Shown here: one piece after another, positions 1-11,635 of the stretch
How positions within the stretch are numbered: position 1 is the stretch's first letter
Layout: the number at the start of each line of letters is the position of its first letter
NCBI GenBank assembly: GCA_047495785.1
Contig: JBLDXI010000025.1
Span: 1,984,001-2,048,000 of the forward strand
DNA: 64,000 bases
Reading direction: 5' to 3'
Origin: Lepidodermella squamata
Taxonomy: Eukaryota; Animalia; Gastrotricha
The notes under the pieces: model-generated
Seen by the model: the letters and a program-made list of their open reading frames with translations, nothing else
Told to the model about the DNA's origin: nothing
Database searches by the model: none
Position numbers and translations under genes: made by a program

Positions 1-323
1 TAAAATTTGCAAATCGGTTCGCATTTCCTGAAAATATAACCGTGAGTGACCAATCATAAAACATTTCGAACTGAATGCATACCCCCGCAGCCTGAATAAA
101 CGAATTTTTCGCAAATGTCCCGATCTGCTAGGTAAAAATATCTATCCATGCCTCGGTTCGGCTCCAGGCAGTTGCCAAAGTCCATATCAAGACCGCAAAT
201 AGGATCCTTCAGGCCATTAGGCCCTTCTTCCGCTAGTAAAATTGGTGGCGCTATCAAGTTTGCATATGTTTTCGCCAAAAATTGATAAATTATGATGATA
301 CCAACGGAAAAATTCATTTTCAT
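1..323 (-). CDS. Secreted Kunitz/BPTI-domain protein (5' part; continues past the window start)
   Basis: Hydrophobic N-terminus MKMNFSVGIIII. Kunitz pattern CGLDMDFGNC...YFY...CEKFVYSGCG. A GT-AG intron at 82-28 restores GCGGNANRF. Confidence 0.85.
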
Positions 324-538
324 TTCAGGGCTGCGTGGTTTTACCTTGAAGTTGCACTAAAATGAGGTGTTAACATGAGTTCCTGGCCACCATGTTTACG
401 CAAGCCTGGACTAACTCAGTGGTGTCAACTCAAAGTCAACAAGGAGTAAAGTAGGTGCGAGCTGTTTTCTAATGCTCAGACCTTTATTTATTTTTCTCTC
501 AAAAGAAAAAAACACCGGGAATTCAGCGACTGTCTAAC

Positions 539-1894
539 TTATTTCTCGGATATAGGAATGTTGTCTGAATCGTCAGCAGGTTTGTTCGAATCGTCCGGTT
601 TCGGCGCATCAGGCTTAGCCGCATCATCGCCATCTGTATTATCTGGTGGTGTTTCGGTTGTAGGTTCGGCAGTAGTAGTAGTTTTGGTAGTTGCTGCTGC
701 CGTAATTTTGTCGGGAGTTGTCCTTGCAGCAGTGACAACGTTTGAAATCACGCTTACGCGTCCAATATTAATCGGAGCTATGGAAACAGTTAATTTGTAA
801 ATTTCCAAATATCTTATGTGTAATAATACAGATAGTATAGTAGTACTCACGCCTTGTAGTAGCAGTTGTCGCCGCCCTTGTAATCTCAGTTTCTTCGGCA
901 GAATCTACTGGCTCATCAGTAGGCTCGGTTACAACAGGCGATTTCGCGTTTTGCGTTGCTCGAATCGTGGTGGTAATAGTTGTGCCAGGACGAGTAGTTG
1001 CTTCAGCCCGATTGGTTTCTAAATAGAATGTTATATGAAGAACAGCATTACTAATCAAGTCTCACTCTGCGTTGCGGGTGCTGCAGTACTGGATGCCCTT
1101 ACCCCAGTTATGGCGCTTGAGATTGTAGCTTTCAACCACGCAGCTCCAGCACATGCCCTAGCTATAACTACAACTCCTGTAGCTGGGTTAACACTCGAAA
1201 CGATGCCAAGCAACTTTTGCTTTCCATCAATCTCACACATCACCGGGCCACTCGAGTTGCCTAGAACAGCCTTCTGCTTCTGATCAGCCACGGTAGCACA
1301 AGCTGAGGCTGATGTCTTGCCGCATTCGCTTCTCGCGATCACGTTTAGCTTGACTTTATTGAGCGTTGTCGCGCTTGACCATCCCAGCGCGGTAGCTTCG
1401 GCACAACTGTCAACTGAAGGATCGGCCTCATCAGGATCTTTGTCGCAATCAGTTTCCTCTATCAAACAAATAGGCGCGGCAGATGCTTGGTTGAATTCGA
1501 CCCTACGGTCTAGCCTTATCAAAGCCAGGTCGTACTCCTTATCGCCCTCTGTGAATTTGCGGTTAGGCTGGATTGTTGAGGCATTGACAGCTATTGTTCC
1601 GAAGTAGACAGTAATCCGCCGCACAGCATCGTTTGATGAGATGCAGTGAGCTGCTGTGATCAACCATGGCTGACCACTTGCAGTCGCTCCAACAATTGTA
1701 GCGGCACAGGATGCTGACCAATCTTTGTAACCTATTTCAACTCGAACAGCCCATGGATTCTCCCCCGGGTAGGAAACATCGGCAGAAACACCTCTGGATG
1801 GTTTTCTTGCCGTTGAGGTTCCGCATTGAATTGCTTGGGCTGAAATTTCAGCTATTAACAGACATCCAATCGCTGCAGCCAGAATTTGCATCAT
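539..1894 (-). CDS. Secreted trypsin-fold serine protease homolog with a Thr-rich and acidic C-terminal tail (3 exons)
   Basis: Signal peptide; motifs TAAHC, DLALI, APICL and GNSSGP (degenerate GDSGGP). Introns at about 1064-1019 and 850-778 join the Thr-rich exons. Stop at 539; AATAAA at about 484-489. Confidence 0.8.
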
Positions 1895-1951
1895 TTTAAG
1901 GACCTACAAATGTTCAAAAGAACATTCCATTCAAATGATTTTTGAGGTAGT

Positions 1952-3301
1952 TTACAACCAAATTCTGACCCAATTAGAAAACATGGGTACTTTTGGCCCT
2001 GTTTGAGAACATGAATCAAGTAATCTGCAGAGCTTCATATTAGCCTCATTAGGTAATGTTGGCCATAAAGTTGTAGGTTTCTGATTTCCATAGTGCTCTT
2101 TGCCATAGCTAAAAGCGAGGCACCTTGATCGTCGATTATCAGCTGACATTATCGAATCCTCACATTCGTCAGCACATTCTTCGATGGAATTGAATCGAAA
2201 TATACCAATCACTTTGCCTCGACAGCTTGCATTAGCCAATCGTTCGTATTGCAGCAAGGGGCTATCATTCGGGAATTCTTCGTAATCGAACTGATCAGGA
2301 TTTTCCGTTGTTACCTCTGGCGTAGTTGTCCAGTTTGACACTTATCTCACGGGAATAATTTATAGATGAGATTTTGAGACATATCTAGGCTTACAATCCA
2401 TGTTACGGAGAATTTCTCGAACCAAGTCCATGACATCTACGTTCATCGGAGCTCTTGTCGTAGTTCCTTTAGACCTCTCAATCTTTTCTAGGATGAAATA
2501 GTTTCTCTGTAAAATCTGTAAAATTGGGCAGAAATGTACCTTGAATAATCGAAACCATGGTGTTCAGGTCTGTGATATTGGTGTTAGCGATGAAGCACCC
2601 GACTTCACATGCAGCTTGGCTGTCAAATCGATTCGCATTTCCCCCGGACCCGCAATACTCCAGAGTTTTGCACGATTCCAATTTCGAAACGTAGTAGTAC
2701 TTTGTTTCTCTCTTACTTCCGCTATTACAATCTCCACTATGAGCCGGCAAGTTACAAACTTGTTGCGGGGTAAGCTCAGAAGTTGTTGGTGGCGTAGTGG
2801 TTGTGGTAGTGGTGGTGACGGCTCGGGTTGTAGTTGTGGGCATTGAAGGTCCTGTTCTTAAATACGGCTTCGCCCTCGTGCCACGACAAGACCTTTCACA
2901 TTCTAGCACATCCTGAAACCGGTTTTTATTGCCACCACATCCGGAATACGTCATCGGACGACATAATCCGTCATTTGATTCGTAATAGAATAATATGAAC
3001 CTTTCATTACAGTTTCCGGGTTCTGGAGGAAGGCCACAATCGACGTCTTTGTTGAAGTATGGAGATGTGGATGCCGCAGAGGTAGTGGTTGATGATATGG
3101 CGACCTTGGTCGTAGTTATATTACTCGACCAATCTAAGGTCGAATTACTTTGCGGCGAAACCTAAAACAAAATTATGGCCATTTAGCCATAGCCGAGCGG
3201 TTTAAAAAGCTCACTTCAAAGAAACAGGATGTTATTAAAATTGATGATAACAAAGAAAGGTTTAAAATCCACTGCTTCGTGACAACTGGGCGATAAAACA
3301 T
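1952..3301 (-). CDS. Secreted protein: Kunitz, Thr-rich linker, Kunitz, PAN/apple-like domain
   Basis: ATG at 3301 (MFYRPVVTKQWILNLSLLSSILIT). Kunitz 1: CGLPPEPGNC..YSGCGGNKNRF..C. Kunitz 2: CNLPAHSGDC..GGNANRF. C-terminal EECADEC..RCLAFSY..CRLL is PAN-like. Confidence 0.8.
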
Positions 3302-3487
3302 GTTCGCTGGCTTACATATATGAACAGATTTTAATGCAATATATCAAGAGAATTCGTGTTCAGCTCAGACCTCAACTCGTTACTAATAAGATGCCCTGGT
3401 AATAACGTGACTCAGTAATAACTTTTATTATCCCTTTGAGTGGATAGTAATACAATCGGCGTATACGAATTTATGAACGGATGCTTC

Positions 3488-4055
3488 TGTTGGGGCCGGA
3501 GCCCGATTTCGGTCCGCACGTATTCAGGCAGGCCCGTATATGCAGTCGGGTAACGGCGCTCTGCCACTCCGCCCTCAGACCGTTCTAAAAAAAGCCCGTA
3601 TGCGACATTTTCTGCAAATATTATGAATTTGGACGAATCTTCCTTCACTGCCCACGAGGTGTTAACCTAAGCACGGCAGAGAACAATGGGGATTAGTGCT
3701 ATTGTTGAGCGCTCGTGCGCGCCGCAATTAGGCCGCCGGGCATGGGCTGTCCTGGTTTGGACCTCGATAACCGCGTCTGTTATCATCGCTCGCCCAAGCA
3801 CCAAGCCCGGTGGTGGCAAGCGCGCACAACAACACACTGGCCTATTGTTCTCTGCACCGCTCTCGGTTTTACACCTGCGCTTGCCCGAGTCCGCTCATGC
3901 GGTATTTTTTGTTTGAATTCATTCGATTTATCATAAACATTGCGTACGGGCAGTATTTGAAGCGATCCGAGGGCGGACAGGCAAACCACTGCTTCTCGGT
4001 CAGGTTCGGGAATGACAGAGTACGAACGGACACATTTCGGTCTCCGGCCCCAACA
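3488..4055. mobile_element. 568-bp non-autonomous element with terminal inverted repeats, TGT...ACA ends and a 4-bp TSD (Ginger-like)
   Basis: Starts TGTTGGGGCCGGAG and ends CTCCGGCCCCAACA (14-bp perfect inverted repeat, imperfect for about 140 bp). Flanked on both sides by CTTC. GC-richer than its flanks; no transposase ORF. Confidence 0.85.
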
Positions 4056-6284
4056 CTTCCATTTTATTTTTCACCAAAGCTGTCAATATCGCAGTGGTTC
4101 ACGCAATCGATAAGAGTGCTCCAATTGTTTTCTGTAAAAACGGAAGTTGGAAATTAGAAATGAATTCAGCAAGGTTTAGGAACTCACTATTTCCTCCACA
4201 GCCTCTATACATGAATTGTTGGCATTTTGATGCCGTTGAGTTGAAGAAATATTTGACATAGAGATCCGTGAATTGGTCACCCTCGCAGAATTTCCCATGA
4301 TCCAATTTTTGAACGCACGGGTCAACGGTAGCTGTAGCCGTGGGAGCGATCAGAGTCGGAATTAAAAGGCCCTCATTTTTGTAATAGCATGGTTGAATAG
4401 GAGGGTCCCATTCGTTCCCAGCCTTACAGGTGCTTCGCTTTACAGGACTCTCACAACCTTCCTCGCAGTAGATGCTGACCTTAGCTCCTTCATAAACTTC
4501 ATCCTCAATGAAAAGATACTCGTTGTATTCATCGGCTATAAGGATGAATCCTCTCTCCAATTTCGGAACCGTACACCAGTCCGGCAGTCCGGGGGACAAA
4601 ACTGACTTCGAATCGCTGGAAGTCTCATTGAATCTTACAGTAATTTCAGAGGTCTTCAGGCAACGACCAGGCAGGGTCCATTGGCCATTGGGTAGGCAAG
4701 TAACAAAGCCTACTCCGCTTGTTAGAGTGTAATTCTCATTACAGCCTATCCACAATATCGTTCCAATCGCCATCTCTGTTTCTTTTTCGGTATTCTCGTA
4801 GAATCCATTATCGAGAGGCGGTAGATAGCCACATGCACTTGCAGCTGGCCCCGGTGATGGAGTAGTTACCGTCAGATTTTCGATAAGTTGAGTAGTTTGA
4901 ATCTCAACCTCGTCAATTATTTTCAGACATTTTCCTAAGCTGGGGAACCAGCCTCCTCTTCCGGTACAAACGCTTTCGAGCAGGTGAGACTCAGATGTGT
5001 AGAAATAACCGACATTGCAGTTTACAGAGACAATGGCTCCGGGTGATAGCAGTTTTGAGCTTGTGTGTTGATTTTTGTCGTACTTCACGAATATATCTCC
5101 ATAATCGATATCTGGCAGGATGCATCGAATTGGGGTACCCTCGAATGGCCCGGCCATTTTTAGGTTGACAGTACTTTTGGTTGATGCCATGGTATTAGTT
5201 TCTTTAACCGCTGTCGTGGGTTTAGAAGTGGTCGTCGTCGTCGTTGTAGTTGAAGTGGAGGTAGTTGGAGGGAGAATTCCAGCAACTTGTTGAATCCAGG
5301 GCAAAACATGGCAGACTTTGCTGTAGATCGACGGCAAATCTCCACGGCAGTCAGCGATCCCTTGGGACGTAACTCCAATCAAGTGGAACCTATCGTGCTT
5401 CTTACACATCAAAGGACCGCCTGAATCACCGAGGCAAGTGTCGCCATTCTGCTGAGCTTGCGCGCATAGCTGATCCTCACCAATAGTTTTGTTGTTTGTT
5501 AGGATAGAATTGCATAGGCTATTTGGTTTGACGGTCACTGAGATTTTTTTGAGCACTTCAGATTTCATCTCTGGTAATAGAAGGAAGATGGAAATTTCAG
5601 GGAAGAAATAAATTTGAATCACATACCAGCGCCAGTTACTCCCCACCCTGAAGCTCCGGAATAATCGCAGTCTTCTTGAGCAGCCGGGTCGTCATCTTCG
5701 TAAACGCATGATTCATCGGGTAGGCAAATCGGAATGACAAAGTTATTGATTATCACAGGACGCAAGAGTTTGAGCAGAGCGAAATCATAGGTGTAGTCAG
5801 ATCCTTGTAGCGAAAATTTCGGATGCACAAAGACTTCCACTCGTCGAACTTGCTCACTCGCCTCACTTGCTAAACTGATATTATGCTTGCCCAGGTGAGC
5901 ATTAATTCTGTAAAACCACAAGAATTGATAAAGAAATCATCTGAAGGTAAAGCTTACAATAAGGCATCATTTCCTTGCATCCTAGCGCAATGAGCAGCTG
6001 TGAGAAGCCATCTATCAGACAACAAAGCCGCTCCACAGTGTCGAGTCATGGTTTCGTTCGGAAATTCTATGTCAAGATAAGCCTTTTGAGTAGCAAAATT
6101 GTATTTACAGCATTTGAATGGCAGTTCTTATAGTTACCATCCAAGGAAATTCGTGCTGATTAGCTGGGCCTCCTCCAGTTATTCTGGGCATTATTGAAGG
6201 TCTCGGTTTCACAACGCCACATGTTAGCGCATGACTTGATCCTATTGCCCAAGAAATAGGAAAGAAAAAGAACCAAAAATCCAT
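4000..6284 (-). CDS. Secreted modular trypsin-like protease: protease domain, Thr-rich linker, 3 Sushi/CCP, Kunitz
   Basis: Signal peptide MDFWFFFFPISWAIG; activation site R|ITGG; LTAAHC, DFALL and DTCLGDSGGP (intact triad, Asp in the S1 pocket). Three C..C..C..W..C Sushi repeats. Kunitz YFFN..CQQFMYRGCGGN|KNNW..C. The current stop (4000-4002) lies inside the inserted element. Confidence 0.88.
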
Positions 6285-6468
6285 CTTCCGATCTGAAGGC
6301 GAAAACGAGGAATGACGGGTTATACCTTCACGTTGCACGAAGTCATATTTTATTTACATGCTCACTGGGACAATAAACAGGGTCACGGGGTATGCATTTT
6401 TCACTAGTTGAAATTTCATTACACAAAAAACAGCTATGTTTTCTAGGCTGCACAAATTCGGTGTTTTT

Positions 6469-7801
6469 TCACCCGAAAAACGTGGTTGAATCCCACCGCT
6501 GCCAGTACTGCGTAAACATCGAAAAGTCAGGTTCCGCAGTAACCGTTGTTGTTGCCGTCGTGGTACTGGTCGTACTCGATGTTTCGGTATAACTATAAGA
6601 GCCATCAGTTACCACGTCTCCGTCTACCACAGGTATAGGCTCTGGTGTAGTAGTGGTCGTAGTAGTAGTCGTTGTTGTTTTAGTGGTAGATGTAGTAGTC
6701 CTATTTACTCCGGGTCTAACATCGCAGTTGGTTAGGAGTTGACACTTGAGGGTAACATTGTTGTACGCGATGGCATTGCACTGTGGCCTGAAACGATCAC
6801 AAGTCACCGCGCACTCGCCAACCCAGGTGAAGATGTAGGTCTTGATTGTGGTCGCATCTCTGCAGTCAGTTTCGTTAATTTGACGGTAAATGTTCAAAGG
6901 AAACGGTGTAGTAGATAAAGTTGTTTCGAACGGCTTCTTTGTCTCTGCAACTCAGAATCAAGCTAAATTAACTGTAACTGATTAAAAACTCACTCGGCGA
7001 TTGAGTAATGTAAGCTTCAGTTGTAGTCGTTGTTGAAGCCAGCTGAAATTTAGGAAGCATGATTTCGACAATACAAAATCAAAATCAGCAGTTACCGTTG
7101 TGCCCCCAGTTATACAGATCCTAATACACTCGGATTCACTAATAAATTTATTTTCGTTCCCACCAGCTGGGCAGAATACGAAACCTCTACACTTCCCTGT
7201 ATACTTGCTGTAGTAAAATTGAATCGATGCGTTGTTAGTTGTAAGACAATCTCCTCTGTCAAGCGGAATATTGCATCGAGGGTCTAAGCCTGGATAAATG
7301 ACAGTTGTCGTCGGAGTTGTGCGAACTGTGGTTGTAGACATAGGAGACGTAGACGAGGCGGGCGAGGTCGTACTCGTCCGGGTAGTAGTAGATGCTCGTG
7401 TTGTGGAAGCTGTGGAAAACATCGTAGAATCCGGCGTCATCGATGTCGTAGTAGTTGTAGTTCTCGGAGTTGTTTCATACGGGGTCGCCAGACTTCCGTT
7501 ACAAGCCTTCTGGCATTCGTCCATATTCAAGAAAAAGTTAGTGTTCCCACCACATCCTCCGAATCTAATTAATAAATTTATGCGGCTTAAAAGCTGAGAT
7601 TTTACGTTCTTACTGAAAGTATTTGCATCTAGCCTCGTGCGATTCGTAGTAGACCATTTGAACAAATGTTTTACACGGGCCCGGTACTGGCGGGTACCCG
7701 CAGTCAATATCCCTATTAAAGGGGCGACGGGTCGCGACACCATTAGCAGTTTGAGTGAGTGCAGAAATTAAGAAAATGAGCCTTAAGTACATGATTGCCA
7801 T
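6469..7801 (-). CDS. Secreted mucin-like protein: Kunitz, Thr-rich, Kunitz, PAN/apple-like, Thr-rich
   Basis: Signal peptide MAIMYLRLIFLISAL. Kunitz 1: CGYPPVPGPCKTF..|FGGCGGNTNFF. Kunitz 2: CNIPLDRGDC..GGNENKF. PAN-like ECAVTC..CNAIAY..CQLL. The 3' end is uncertain. Confidence 0.8.
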
Positions 7802-8020
7802 GATTACAAACGTGGGTGCACCGAAACGCTCTTGTACGTAACACTCAGTGCACTAAATTTTTAGCTTTGCAGGGGCAAAAACAACAGCAAGTCGTCTCGG
7901 CTAAACAATGAGTTCCAATTGGGCGTGGGAGTTTTAAAAATAATTCAAAATATATTCTCATCCATTTTTTTATTTATGAAAAAATCGAAAATTACATGAA
8001 CAGTTAATTAGGCAAAACAG

Positions 8021-8852
8021 TTATTTATTTGGGACGAATCCGCCGGACAAATAAGTTTCCCATCCATCAAGGTTAGCAGTTTTCGTGCACGACTGAAGAA
8101 GTTCACAGATGTTGTAAGCCGATGGATCGGTTAGTGACAGGTAAATGCTTCGGAAACGGAATGCAGCGCACTTCCCGCTCTGGGCCGCACAAACTTGTGC
8201 GCAAGCATTTCGCGTCAACTGAGATCCAGCACTCTGCAAAAGCGAGTCACCACTGCAAGCTCCATCATCCAAACGAACGAAAAGTGCCAGGGAATTCTGC
8301 TTTCTAGGCTGCAGAGAGAACTGAGGGAGAGGCGCGGCTGGAGTTACTCTGGAATTGAAACCATCATCTATAGTCACAACTCCATAATTCATGCTATCAG
8401 GCTGTCCTCCGACCAAGCCTTGAATCACTCGAGCACCAGGGGTGACTCTGGAAAGAGGCGTCACTGTTCTGGTCGCTGGAGTGCTCTTCTGAGTTACTCC
8501 AAGTAAACGAGATGCTAATGTAACTCTTTTCGTTGTTGTGGCAGGTTTTTTCGTTGTTCCAGCCGATCTTCCAACGATAGGCGTTCGTGTAACACCAGCC
8601 TTCGTTGTCGTTGACCCGGCTAATGCGTCCAAAACTCGCACAATCGGTCGAGGAGTTTGCGTTTGAGTCACTGGTTGTTGGCTCTTCTGCATCAGATTCT
8701 GAAGAGTGTACATCTTTGGTGTTGTTCTTGGCTGAAAGATGAAAGATTATTACAATTCATAAAATCGACCCTACAAATACCGTTTCCTGCCCTTTCACAT
8801 CCTGTATTGCCAAAACGACTGATAAAATCGCTAAAACAACGTAGCTATTCAT
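8021..8852 (-). CDS. Secreted protein with a Thr/Arg-rich region and a C-terminal PAN/apple-like domain
   Basis: First exon MNSYVVLAILSVVLAIQDVKG (ATG 8852) splices to ORF 8021-8713. ACAQVC..CAAFRF..CELLQSC. Confidence 0.72.
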
Positions 8853-9066
8853 TTTATAGCTTCGAACTTTTATTTTAATGATTTTTGTTAAGCGCCACTA
8901 TTTAGCGGGTCCCTAGAGTTTTTTAAGGGTCTATTATCCTGGAAACAATAGGGATTTACAGGTGCAAGGATTTGTTTCCCAGCCAAACAACTCGAACAGA
9001 ATAGAATGGTTATTATAGAATTAGTCAAATTTGGCATACAATAGCAGTCAATTGAATAATGTTTTT

Positions 9067-9795
9067 TCACAGTCTGCGCCATGTTTCAGCAACCTGGTCA
9101 GCCTCGGGCGCTATTGTATTGCAGCTGTCCAAGAGCTCGCAAAAAGTGTTGTTGCGGCCAAGGCTTGGCACGAAGAGGGAATAAAGACGAAATGCTAGGC
9201 AAGGTTTCGATCGGATCCCGGTGCAAACTTCAGCACAGTCTGCAGCTTTCATCGTTCGAGCAGAGTAGCGATAGACTATTTGACCGTCGCCGCAGGTCCC
9301 GAGTACTTTCAGGAACGTTCCTGTGATATTCTGAGTAACGCAACGTTTCTTGCATGCCTCCAGTGTCGTAAAGTAGTTCTTAGCTCCGTTGCTATCTCCG
9401 GAGCATGGCCAGTATTTCTGGCACTGATAGGTTTTAGCATCGTAATAGTACGCAGAAACGCCTTTTTCGAATAGACATATGTTGTCAAACTGAACTCGCT
9501 CGTTGCAGACCTCGGCTGATGGGGTAGTAGAACGAGCAGAAATTAAACCTGAAAAATTCGTTGATGCAAAACAACATCATTTTCTAAAACGGGATCAATA
9601 CGTCGATTTGACGGCGTTGAAGCCCTTGTGGACAGATTCGTTGTTGTCCGCAACAACCTTGTTATTCTTGTAGTAGTCCGCTACATAAATTATTCTTAGA
9701 TTCAAGAACACGATGATGATAAATATTACAATTTGAGTGACGGCCAAGTTGAAAACCGCAACAAGGCAAATTACCATTAGAGTATGCCGCAGCAT
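9067..9795 (-). CDS. Secreted protein with a divergent Kunitz-like domain and a PAN/apple-like domain
   Basis: Signal peptide MLRHTLMVICLVAVF. The exon 9548-9067 reads CNERVQFDNIC..YYYDAKTYQC..NYFTTLEACKKRC then DCAEVC..CLAFR..CELLDSC. The phase of the second intron was not fully resolved. Confidence 0.72.
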
Positions 9796-9918
9796 TCCTG
9801 TTTAACCTTTAAAGCTTTTCAAAGCGAAAGTTTCACAAAAGGCGATTTACTTTCAGTTTCCTAGTCTTCTTGTATAACAATGGCGCCAGGAAAAAAATTG
9901 AAAGAAAACAGTTAGCTC

Positions 9919-10813
9919 CTACGGCAAACGCCTGTATGTTTCTACGGAAGCATCGGGCTCAGGGCCGATAGAGTTGCACCTGTCCAAGAGTTCGCAGAAT
10001 GACAACTTTTTGCCCAAACTGGGATTCAGAGCTGAAAAGTATCGGAACGCGACACATGTTGCTTTTTTGGATCCTGTGCACATTGAAGCACAATCGGCTG
10101 ATTTTACGCCTGTTGATGCATGGCGATTTATCACTGTAGCATCCATACACTTCCCAACTACTTTGACGAAGGTCCCCGTGACGTTCATAGTCGGACAGCG
10201 GAGTCTGCACTCGGTAAGAGTCGGAAAATAGTTCAGCGAGCCATTGCTGTTTCCAGTGCAAGGTGTGAATGACTGGCAATTTGCAGTGTTAGCATCGTAG
10301 AAGTAACCCCTGACGCTGTTCTCCAGCATGCAGATGTTCGTGTACTGAACCTTTTCTGTGCATGGATTTCCGAGGATTCTGGCGGCTAAGATCGTTCAAA
10401 AATTATCTAGCGGTCCGAGAATAAAACGAGAATGACTTACCTATGCCAGGATTGGTCAATCCTCGTTGTTGCGCGGTATTATTTGCAACTTGAAGAATTC
10501 TTCTACCAGCAGGAAGAGCAGTCGTTAGCGAATTACGTTTTTTTGTTATTCCTGCCATTCTTCTCAGAGCCGTTGTTGGCCTGCGGGCAGTTGTTCTAAG
10601 AACAGGTCGGGTGGTGATTCCCCCTAATTTTCGTTCAGCCGTCGTTTGCCTCTGGGGAGACAGCCTGACCAATGGCCTTGCAATAGGGCGACTTTGGCAT
10701 TGCGAAAGCTATCAAGTGAATTAAATGCAATCACCTAAATTTTTTAACAAAATGTTTACCTGCAAGTTCACCAGCGCCAATATAAAGATGAGTAAAATCT
10801 GTTCAAGTTTCAT
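9919..10813 (-). CDS. Secreted divergent Kunitz-like plus PAN/apple-like protein with a basic Arg/Thr-rich N-region; paralog of 9067-9795
   Basis: Signal peptide MKLEQILLIFILALV. YFYDANTANC..NYFPTLTECRLRC, then DCASMC..CVAFR..CELLDRC. C-terminus ETYRRL matches ETWRRL of the neighbouring gene. Confidence 0.75.
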
Positions 10814-11019
10814 CCTTTGAGAAATGGTTGGCTTCTTTTAGTGGTCATCAGTGATATGCTAATCCTCATCAGTTCATCAGATAATTAGTGCTTTCCTCGC
10901 TGTAAACAAGCGTCAATTTCAACGTGCAAACACATTAGAAGAATTAAATTAAAAACGATGATCTCAGATTTTATTTAAGCAAAAATTGGCATTCACCGGG
11001 TAATTGTATGGAATATTGT

Positions 11020-11635
11020 TTAAGCCTTCAGCGCCCAATACCTGACGATTGGATCTTTAACCATCGGATTTGGACAATCCGACCCTTTGAGTAAGCAGTA
11101 AGGTTGAGTTGCACTGTCCACATAGGAGAATCCAACACAGTCTCGGGTCTTCAAGCACTCGCCAGCGCATTTTTCCCTGGTCGCCGCATCCGTCACGCTG
11201 CTGAGAACATTGCCACCCGGGCAGTTTCCGTTGAGAACCGTAAAGCTATTGAGAGCAGCCTGCTGATTTTTCGGTGCTGTGGTTGTCTGCAGACTGTTGT
11301 TAAGCTCTAATACCCGCCCTGCCATTTCAGGTAGACCCTCAACTCCGCCACATACAGCGTAGCAGTCTTGTTCGGTTACAAAATTGTTATCGTTGCCTTT
11401 GCAGCCTAGAAATAATAAAACGGAGGTGAAAAAATCGGTCAATGTGAAGCTCAAAGTTCCAACCTCCATAAATGAAGTTCAGGCAAGTCTTATTTGCTGC
11501 ATTGTAATAAAATCGTGGGATGAAAGCCCTGCAAACGTCTGTGTTCGGTTTCTGGAAACAATGTTCCTTATCGATTTCAGCCGCCGAGATCAAAACGAAA
11601 CAAAGCGATGCCGTGAAAATGATTGAGAAACTCAT
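11020..11635 (-). CDS. Secreted protein with a canonical Kunitz domain (P1 Arg) and a PAN/apple domain
   Basis: Signal peptide; CFQKPNTDVCRAFIPRFYY..CLNFIYGG|CKGNDNNF..C; PAN-type KCAGEC..CVGFSY..CLLK. Confidence 0.88.

Follow-up and report, generated by a model that had tools for sequence, protein, structure and literature searches.

HAI-1 is anchored in the membrane, has PKD-like and LDLRA domains, and carries its PAN-like module at the N terminus, and in vertebrate enzymes of the factor XI, kallikrein, and C1r type the binding modules precede the catalytic domain. The Kunitz arrays of ticks and parasitic worms consist of many small secreted genes with conserved cysteine frameworks and fast-changing reactive loops; these families are mostly Kunitz-only and are tied to blood feeding or parasitism. 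In Caenorhabditis elegans, the PAN domains of LET-653 capture this mucin-bearing protein in the luminal matrix (PMC4970718), and nematode cuticle formation involves the secreted Kunitz proteins BLI-5 and MLT-11 (PMC11304992). In barnacles, serine proteases occur in the adhesive alongside Kunitz and other inhibitors (PMC8371367). For gastrotrichs, we found no paper on the molecules that these animals secrete, whether for cuticle, scales, egg envelope, or adhesive-tube glue. Here we describe an array of Kunitz, PAN, and trypsin-fold genes in the gastrotrich Lepidodermella squamata, located at the left end of a 64,000-nucleotide (nt) stretch of contig JBLDXI010000025.1 of GenBank assembly GCA_047495785.1 (C25:1984001-2048000; this whole stretch is referred to below as the window). 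The assembly searched comprises 121.2 Mb in 151 contigs. We put at about even the chance that the array encodes a tethered protease/anti-protease coat, that is, matrix-anchored, mucin-stalked Kunitz proteins together with a tethered protease and a pseudoprotease in a secreted coat. The array offers a concrete, conserved candidate gene set for the secreted coat of gastrotrichs.

Array organization and a collinear locus in a second species

Nine consecutive genes (A to I), all on the minus strand, occupy positions 1 to 11635 of the window in splice-aware models, and all nine products begin with a hydrophobic stretch (best 10-residue Kyte-Doolittle mean, 1.9 to 3.8), from which the signal peptides referred to here are predicted. 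The first-pass annotation of the window had described nine co-oriented genes with signal-like N termini, and the models bear this out for the window; the cluster itself, however, is larger, an old tandem array with at least 14 genes over about 19 kb of a compact genome, and extends left of the window to about position -7200 (genes I to N). Genes J to N are five further genes of the same kind on the same strand in the 40-kb left flank, and the window holds the right-hand two-thirds of the array. The models were produced by a dynamic-programming script that combines codon log-odds with simple donor, acceptor, and length terms, one gene having first been read by eye; the start of gene J is doubtful, and the model of gene K omits the second half of its first Kunitz domain. 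Pfam scans were run on minus-strand open reading frames (ORFs), database searches and fold predictions were done per exon, and spliced protein models were compared only within scripts. The introns of genes A to I are GT-AG introns of 47 to 73 nt, and across the array and related loci all 36 modeled introns are of this type (44 to 73 nt; median, 53 nt).

Most members share one plan, in which a predicted signal peptide is followed by one or two Kunitz heads, then by a spacer rich in Thr, Ser, and Pro, and finally by a PAN/apple-like module at the C terminus. The exceptions are gene F, which encodes a trypsin-like zymogen, and gene H, which encodes a protease homologue with a mucin-like tail. Thr/Ser/Pro-rich stretches with 30 to 40% Thr were found in C, E, F, G, and H, and Pfam and hydrophobicity scans detected no C-terminal hydrophobic anchor in any gene model.

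A relative of the gene B unit (P0017) was found on a 31.5-kb environmental scaffold, L005, with an identical copy on a 3-kb contig, L006. Exon-level blastp and gene models gave, on one strand of L005, the order hemicentin-like gene, A', B', D', E', F', G'1, G'2, and H', with spacers of 111 to 357 nt; this order is collinear with that of the window. Eight positional counterparts keep both order and orientation between the two loci, which is consistent with a block that did not arise by recent chance. Amino acid identity was 49% between A and A', 30% between B or C and B', 33% between D and D' (same architecture, same position), 44% between F and F', 38 to 40% between G and its two tandem counterparts G'1 and G'2, and 32% between H and H'; E and E', with 55% overall and 70% over the PAN exon, are the best-conserved pair of the array. 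All cysteine frameworks are kept.

The exons of the hemicentin-like gene that adjoins the array in the window have 70 to 86% protein identity and 65 to 74% nucleotide identity to those on L005. Synonymous sites are saturated, those of the hemicentin-like gene included, and synonymous divergence (dS), hence also the ratio of nonsynonymous to synonymous divergence (dN/dS), is not estimable between the species. Because nucleotide identity in the hemicentin-like gene is low and dS is saturated, the two species must be deeply diverged. Values of dN are 0.44 to 0.86 in the array versus 0.11 to 0.24 in the hemicentin-like gene, a two- to sevenfold difference. Each locus has its own tandem duplicates, B and C in the window and G'1 and G'2 on L005, and the latter are young (dN/dS, 0.27).

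The orthologue comparison also shows domain shuffling, with a Kunitz-for-PAN swap on the protease and the gain or loss of mucin-like or Pro/Tyr-rich spacers. Gene A has a short linker between Kunitz and PAN, where A' (L005:6537-7889) has about 200 residues of Pro/Tyr-rich repeats of the PYYPPPAPQ type. At its C terminus F has a third Sushi unit and a Kunitz domain, and F' has a Pro-rich stretch and a PAN module; the Sushi match of F' reached 29.5 bits in two stretches, and the start of F' is obscured by a run of N at L005:10830-10930. In H', Lys replaces His57 and Ser195 is missing, and the position and the Thr-rich tail are retained. Catalytic residues have been lost here with the gene kept, and catalysis is therefore not what is conserved in the H lineage. 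Gene N of the left flank carries PCGWQPP and poly-Pro repeats ahead of its PAN module; like those of A', these repeats are reminiscent of cross-linked structural or adhesive proteins. E and E' share the C-terminal motif YW.RW.S..F (positions 6469-6520 and L005:10750-10792) despite a diverged preceding tail.

Two other parsings of the locus were considered and rejected. The PAN exon at 6469-6951 is not a gene of its own, because it has neither start codon nor signal peptide, splices in frame to E, and is collinear with E'. The array genes are not alternative 3' exons of the hemicentin-like gene, since a separate signal peptide is predicted for every one of them and many are equipped with a poly(A) signal.

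Kunitz, PAN, and protease modules

The window contains nine Kunitz or Kunitz-like domains (two each in E and G and one each in A, B, C, F, and I) and six PAN-like domains (A, B, C, D, E, and G). These are the numbers that the first-pass annotation had given, and they were recovered by Pfam, cysteine patterns, hidden Markov models (HMMs), and hhalign. All four modules that it had recognized (Kunitz, PAN, trypsin fold, and Thr-rich spacer) are present, but a fifth, Sushi/CCP, has to be added, with three copies in F.

The Pfam cut-off for Kunitz_BPTI (PF00014), 21 bits, was exceeded by A, B, E, F (33.4 bits), G, and I. The two exon halves of the Kunitz domain of A scored 35.2 and 25.1 bits (1.4e-8 and 2.1e-5), the Kunitz domains of G matched in two stretches (1.3e-18; 67.4 bits), and that of I reached 31 bits (3e-7). 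The cysteine spacing C-x8-C-x15-C-x7-C-x12-C-x3-C is canonical or nearly so in A, in both Kunitz domains (K1 and K2) of E and of G, and in I, and F has a lengthened loop. The six cysteines of the B and C domains have a noncanonical spacing (9/16/5/15/3), and the Kunitz half of the B model has a predicted local distance difference test score (pLDDT) of 40 to 67. The Kunitz domain of C was not scored alone by Pfam; C has 52% identity to B over the whole unit. At the reactive-site P1 position, R, K, L, M, N, E, T, H, and P all occur across the array and L005, and orthologues differ: Lys in the window corresponds to Glu on L005 in E.K1, Leu to Arg in E.K2, and Asn to Arg in G.K1, and A stays Arg.

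Among the PAN-like modules, the Pfam cut-off was passed by A (PAN_4, 28.4 versus 27 bits; PAN_1, 22.7 versus 21.4 bits) and by G (PAN_1, 25.5 bits; 1.2e-5) and was missed by B, C, D, and E (PF00024 and PF14295); gene D gave no Pfam match in the minus-strand ORF scans. An alignment of 11 sequences has a core of six invariant cysteines. A leave-one-out HMM of the family recovered B, C, and D at E values of 1e-11 to 1e-15 (D, 1.6e-11), and the E-type module aligned with the family profile in hhalign at 85% probability (E value, 5.7e-6). PAN_1 was the top weak Pfam match of gene E in both species. Against the Protein Data Bank (PDB), the family profile matched chains of the HGF N domain alone (E value, 0.006). 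In the AlphaFold model of B exon 3, the PAN half has a pLDDT of 72 to 90, and the top Foldseek matches were the plasminogen PAN domain, the HGF N domain, the HAI-1 MANEC domain (2msx), and a factor XI apple domain, all with E values of >0.03; the full HAI-1 ectodomain (5h7v) was also among the top structural matches. By their six-cysteine core and predicted fold, B, C, D, and E carry a PAN-like module that falls below the Pfam thresholds.

Gene F appears to encode an active, Arg/Lys-specific trypsin-like zymogen, judging by the complete set of catalytic and activation features. Its catalytic domain, which matched Pfam Trypsin in three exon pieces (5.6e-17 and 2.9e-9), aligned with plasma kallikrein at an E value of 1e-14 with Asp189, Cys191, Ser195, and Cys220 in place. 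The layout is unusual in placing the catalytic domain at the front. Of the three Sushi (PF00084) units, one exceeded the cut-off (49 bits; 8.3e-13), and the other two were assigned by a C..C..C..W..C pattern and because the region aligned, in both its halves, to the Sushi pair of F'.

Gene H, in contrast, probably encodes an atypical or inactive protease homologue, as its sequence departs from that of active S1 proteases despite the retained triad. Pfam Trypsin matched at 1.5e-19 (71 bits), and the best PDB alignment was to factor XI and plasma kallikrein (E value, 2e-9). Substitutions include Asp194Asn, Gly196Ser, Asp189Lys, and Cys191Val, the last without the Cys191-Cys220 disulfide, and the N terminus reads GVSA rather than the Ile16-type IVGG. 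The first-pass annotation had spoken of one intact and one degenerate protease. The former description agrees with F; the latter seems fair for the activation machinery of H but unfair for its triad, in which His57, Asp102, and Ser195 are kept. As far as can be told from the motifs, enzyme, pseudo-enzyme, and Kunitz domains are encoded side by side, as had also been proposed. The coordinates of all features are given in Table 1.

Table 1. Gene models, domains, and neighboring features of the array, in window coordinates unless a scaffold is named (negative positions lie left of the window)
Feature	Position	Strand	Description
Gene A	11020..11635	-	2 exons (11635-11464, 11405-11020), 185 aa: signal peptide, Kunitz, short linker, PAN
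Gene A Kunitz	11350-11560	-	P1 Arg; split by 58-nt phase-1 intron at GG|C
Gene A PAN	Cys core 11074-11223	-	PAN_4 1.7e-6, PAN_1 8.9e-5; PAN_2 also matched
Gene B	9919..10813	-	3 exons, 262 aa: signal peptide, Thr/Arg-rich spacer, variant Kunitz, PAN-like
Gene B variant Kunitz	10195-10362	-	Cys spacing 9/16/5/15/3; P1 Met; Pfam 1.6e-4, 22.2 bits
Gene B PAN-like	9925-10191	-	AlphaFold and Foldseek
Gene C	9067..9795	-	3 exons, 208 aa; tandem paralogue of B, same architecture
Gene C domains	Variant Kunitz 9340-9507, PAN-like 9070-9336	-	P1 Leu; 52% identity to B
Gene D	8021..8852	-	2 exons, 260 aa: signal peptide, Thr/Pro-rich spacer, PAN-like (Cys core 8087-8257), no Kunitz
Gene E	6469..7801	-	4 exons, 393 aa: Kunitz, Thr-rich, Kunitz, Thr-rich, PAN-like, Thr-rich tail
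Gene E domains	Kunitz 1 7501-7702, Kunitz 2 7114-7275, PAN-like 6724-6864	-	P1 Lys (Kunitz 1), Leu (Kunitz 2); Pfam Kunitz 1.8e-14, 54.1 bits
Gene F	4064..6284	-	5 exons, 667 aa: catalytic domain, Thr-rich spacer, three Sushi/CCP, Kunitz
Gene F activation site	6171-6185	-	R|ITGG, after signal peptide and short propeptide with one Cys
Gene F catalytic residues	5987-6001, 5766-5786, 5413-5430	-	His57 in TAAHC, Asp102 in DFALLKL, Ser195 in GDSGGP; model and alignment
Gene F Thr-rich spacer	From 5271	-	Composition
Gene F Sushi/CCP	5124-4927, 4833-4660, 4575-4387	-	Three units
Gene F terminal Kunitz	4091-4317	-	P1 Glu; intron-split; Pfam 5.1e-8
Gene G	1952..3301	-	4 exons, 396 aa: signal peptide, Thr/Ser-rich spacer, Kunitz 1, Thr-rich spacer, Kunitz 2, linker, PAN
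Gene G domains	Kunitz 1 2886-3038, Kunitz 2 2595-2756, PAN Cys core 2009-2224	-	P1 Asn in both; Pfam
Gene H	539..1894	-	3 exons, 411 aa: signal peptide, trypsin-fold domain, Thr-rich then acidic tail
Gene H motifs	1643-1657, 1511-1531, 1244-1261	-	TAAHC, DLALIRL, GNSSGP; His57, Asp102, Ser195 kept
Gene I	323 to -430 (in window, 1..323)	-	232 aa: signal peptide, Kunitz (P1 Leu), acidic linker, PAN-like (beyond window); exon 2 from 27 to -430
Gene N (left flank)	L003:2804-3778	-	PCGWQPP/poly-Pro repeats, PAN
Hemicentin-like gene	12177 to at least 26504	-	Ig/I-set, TSP1, EGF_CA/cEGF exons
Foldback repeat	3480-4061		Between F and G; arms 3488-3536 and 4007-4055 (49 nt, 76% complementary)
ABCG-like gene pair	C25:1969766-1974458 (-14235 to -9543)	-	Two tandem half-transporter genes; Walker A GPSGAGKST
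Kunitz/PAN ORFs beyond the array	-19900 to -17874		Three ORFs

To the right, the start of gene A lies 541 nt downstream of the last exon of the very large hemicentin-like gene, which was recognized by EGF_CA and cEGF matches in Pfam and by similarity for its TSP1 and Ig exons. Exon by exon, its identity to the equivalently placed gene on L005 is 67 to 96%, and its last exons have a G+C content of 54 to 56% versus about 44% in the array. Beyond the left end of the array lie one plus-strand gene, the two ABCG-like genes, and three more Kunitz/PAN ORFs, the ABCG-like pair sitting between the main array and these ORFs. The F-G spacer, with 763 nt the longest of the array, owes its length to a dispersed foldback repeat, similar to a miniature inverted-repeat transposable element, of which at least 40 copies (67 to 80% identity) occur on many contigs, often as inverted pairs. 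A DNA search of the assembly for a second copy of the locus returned nothing but this repeat and thus no allelic or duplicate copy.

The array was called lineage specific in the first-pass annotation, and the database searches agree. When 1.84 billion representatives were searched with HMMER using the variant-Kunitz and PAN unit of B, 12 matches had E values of <1e-3, and P0017 alone had both domains. B and C have no further paralogue in the genome, and their sole relatives are each other and P0017 on L005 (29% identity; E value, 6.8e-13). When H exon 1, the large F ORF, and B exon 3 served as queries in word-index protein searches, to which a length filter was applied, the result was nothing or weak generic trypsin matches, and an exact-product look-up of the H ORF gave no record. 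Scans of metagenome contigs of the Joint Genome Institute with alignments of the conserved gene E revealed no third species. In the ESM Atlas, searched with single-exon Kunitz-Kunitz-PAN and Kunitz-PAN units, no Kunitz-plus-PAN cluster was found; the nearest entries were PAN-only with scores of ≤0.80 and are leads only.

Within the genome, at least 149 Kunitz and at least 67 PAN matches of this type form arrays on C13, C15, C17, C25, C26, C29, and C33. With the same module mix forming several other arrays, the locus is not unique but belongs to a genome-wide expansion. Scattering of these architectures across genomes had been named beforehand as evidence that would count against a special system; such scattering is found in part, in the several other arrays of this genome. 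The locus is a lineage-specific arrangement of well-known extracellular modules, to which it adds, as read from the gene models, an apparently active Sushi-bearing protease, a pseudoprotease, and a gene order conserved in a second species. Another array of the genome shows pairwise identical Kunitz scores and spacing, and likewise PAN matches, at C25:2303297-2366779 and C26:589293-651909; it is therefore present twice, either through a recent segmental duplication or because haplotypes were left uncollapsed.

Possible function and alternative explanations

If the array encodes a tethered protease/anti-protease coat, its proteins would be exported into a glycoprotein coat such as an apical matrix or cuticle, mucus, an egg envelope, or an adhesive. 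There, the PAN module would tether each protein to matrix glycans or proteins, and the Thr/Ser/Pro-rich spacer would be O-glycosylated and serve as an extended stalk. The Kunitz heads would bind serine proteases, either the putatively Arg/Lys-specific F of the array itself or foreign enzymes, and this binding would confine proteolysis within the coat, with H as a noncatalytic binding partner. Such an array could have grown by tandem duplication and exon or module shuffling, with reactive loops and spacers changing fastest. The common plan is most simply understood as that of a secreted, glycosylated protein that is tethered to a matrix and binds proteases. An anchoring role is suggested by the exchange of Kunitz for PAN at the end of F between the two species and, by analogy, by the PAN domains of LET-653; the nematode Kunitz proteins and the barnacle adhesive mentioned above are further analogies. 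For an inhibitory role speak the diverse P1 residues, which change between orthologues, and the reactive-loop positions, which differ more often than scaffold positions in six orthologous pairs (28/36 versus 142/248; one-sided Fisher p = 0.013).

Several points weigh against this interpretation. O-glycosylation and PAN tethering are proposed from composition and by analogy. A basic P1 residue, as expected against an enzyme with Asp189, is present in just two of the nine Kunitz domains of the window (Arg in A and Lys in E.K1), the other seven having Met, Leu, Leu, Glu, Asn, Asn, and Leu; inhibition of F, or of anything, by domains with P1 Asn, Glu, Leu, or Met may be in doubt. The difference between reactive loops and scaffold is a modest result that depends on loop positions of our own choosing and on two species. 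The conserved order may reflect inertia, and the gene models are predictions of a script. Protein searches and look-ups returned no transcript, protein, or tissue record for the nine genes, the coverage of this genome being uncertain. Co-regulation, which the first-pass annotation had proposed, was not borne out: a search for shared k-mers in 19 spacers against shuffled sequence found AATAAA alone enriched, footprinting of orthologous spacers revealed no conserved noncoding block, and acceptor-like sites before the ATGs of all genes were not enriched over shuffled sequence (Mann-Whitney p = 0.25). The terms "secretion system" and the tissues it named were guesses.

It is unlikely, in our judgment, that the array instead supplies a tanned or cross-linked structural or adhesive material, such as eggshell, cuticle scales, or adhesive-tube glue, in which Kunitz and PAN would do no more than provide stable disulfide knots and interaction pads, with F as a processing enzyme and without any protease inhibition. 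The repeats of A' and gene N would suit such a material, most P1 residues are unlike those of strong trypsin inhibitors, and the terminal Kunitz domain of F (P1 Glu) is replaced by PAN in F' as if either merely docks. There is also the precedent of BLI-5, which in vitro raised protease activity instead of inhibiting it (PMC11304992). However, reactive loops that diverge faster than their scaffold are unexpected for a purely structural knot, A and A' both have P1 Arg, and Arg or Lys recurs at P1 (A, E.K1, J.K1, L.K1, and G'.K1). Nor was a cross-linking enzyme (peroxidase, tyrosinase, or lysyl oxidase) seen in the array.

An absence of any joint function also seems improbable. The locus would then be an ordinary tandem array of fast-evolving secreted genes with independent roles, for example in gut, epidermis, or defense, and shared order would mean lack of rearrangement. 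This would be in keeping with the abundance of Kunitz and PAN matches in other arrays of the genome, with the lack of a shared promoter motif or conserved noncoding block, and with signs of separate transcription units, namely, an AATAAA in about half of the spacers and, in gene A, a TATA-like box 74 nt before the ATG and an AATAAA 45 nt past the stop. It sits poorly with eight counterparts that keep order and orientation past synonymous saturation, including F and H, which are not copies of their neighbors, and with spacers of 57 to 124 nt, which leave little room for independent promoters.

Compatible with the functional readings, and in itself doubtful, is an operon-like organization in which some or all neighbors are transcribed polycistronically and resolved by spliced-leader trans-splicing. 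Apart from the repeat-bearing F-G spacer, same-strand spacers measure 57 to 219 nt, and the shortest (G-H, 57 nt at 1895-1951; K-L, 87 nt; B-C, 123 nt at 9796-9918, from the stop of B to the start of C; J-K, 124 nt; and 111 to 112 nt on L005) would be suitable for such units. The G-H and B-C spacers contain no AATAAA, and acceptor-like sites of intron grade lie 9 nt before the ATG of H (score, 6.6; cis-intron median, 6.0) and 8 nt before that of F; on these sequence features, the two spacers and the H site would fit a dicistronic trans-spliced unit. Overall, however, acceptor-like sites are no better than those in shuffled sequence, gene A has its TATA box, and separate compact units are also compatible with the many spacers that are about 200 nt long and contain a poly(A) signal. 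We found no paper on spliced leaders in gastrotrichs. If co-transcription is real, the array would be a functional operon-type example in a phylum for which such organization is undescribed.

A long shot is the combined proposal that the block is under selection as a unit, a matrix-bound extracellular proteolysis cassette of one Arg/Lys-specific zymogen, one pseudoprotease, and graded PAN-anchored, mucin-stalked Kunitz inhibitors, its order fixed beside hemicentin since before synonymous-site saturation in gastrotrichs and its genes at least partly co-transcribed as trans-spliced polycistrons; if it were true, soluble Kunitz proteins tethered by PAN would make up a new class of inhibitors anchored in a matrix, HAI-1-like in their working and independently built. 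If neither inhibition nor co-transcription holds, the array is one more lineage-specific expansion of secreted disulfide-rich proteins, ordinary in kind.

Comparison with known systems

With the Kunitz arrays of ticks and parasitic worms, the array of the window and L005 shares the pattern of loops that change faster than the scaffold. Unlike those arrays, its Kunitz domains are fused to mucin-like spacers and PAN modules, and it belongs to a free-living microscopic animal.

Factor XI, prekallikrein, and C1r/C1s/MASP resemble the protease genes in that PAN/apple or Sushi/CCP modules are joined to a trypsin-like domain, and F' combines trypsin, Sushi, and PAN. Among solved structures, H is matched best by the catalytic domains of factor XI and kallikrein, which also rank among the top matches of F. 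In contrast to these enzymes, F, F', and H are catalytic-first, F has no PAN, F' has one C-terminal PAN, and neither F nor F' contains CUB, EGF, or a four-apple disc; nothing found at the locus points to a cascade.

LET-653 (PAN-PAN-mucin-ZP) is similar as a secreted protein with PAN and a Pro/Thr/Ser-rich linker, whose PAN domains bind the luminal matrix (PMC4970718), and BLI-5 and MLT-11 are similar as secreted Kunitz proteins required for cuticle formation and molting, with protease partners that are unknown (PMC11304992). In the nematode, PAN and Kunitz are found in separate, unlinked proteins, with a ZP domain in LET-653, whereas the array joins both in one small protein without ZP and places these genes next to those for a protease and a predicted pseudoprotease.

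HAI-1/SPINT1 is a single extracellular protein that has both a PAN/apple-class module (MANEC/MANSC) and Kunitz domains and keeps trypsin-like proteases under control at a surface. The array proteins differ from it in being small and predicted to be soluble, with mucin-like spacers and a C-terminal PAN; no LDLRA, PKD-like, or MANEC match in Pfam and no membrane anchor was found in any model, and HMMER and ESM Atlas searches gave no sequence relationship beyond the domain families. By analogy, HAI-1 is the nearest known working principle, and the resemblance is one of principle only. Should the Kunitz heads act as inhibitors, the array would represent an independent invention of the rule of an anchor module combined with a Kunitz head, as in HAI-1.

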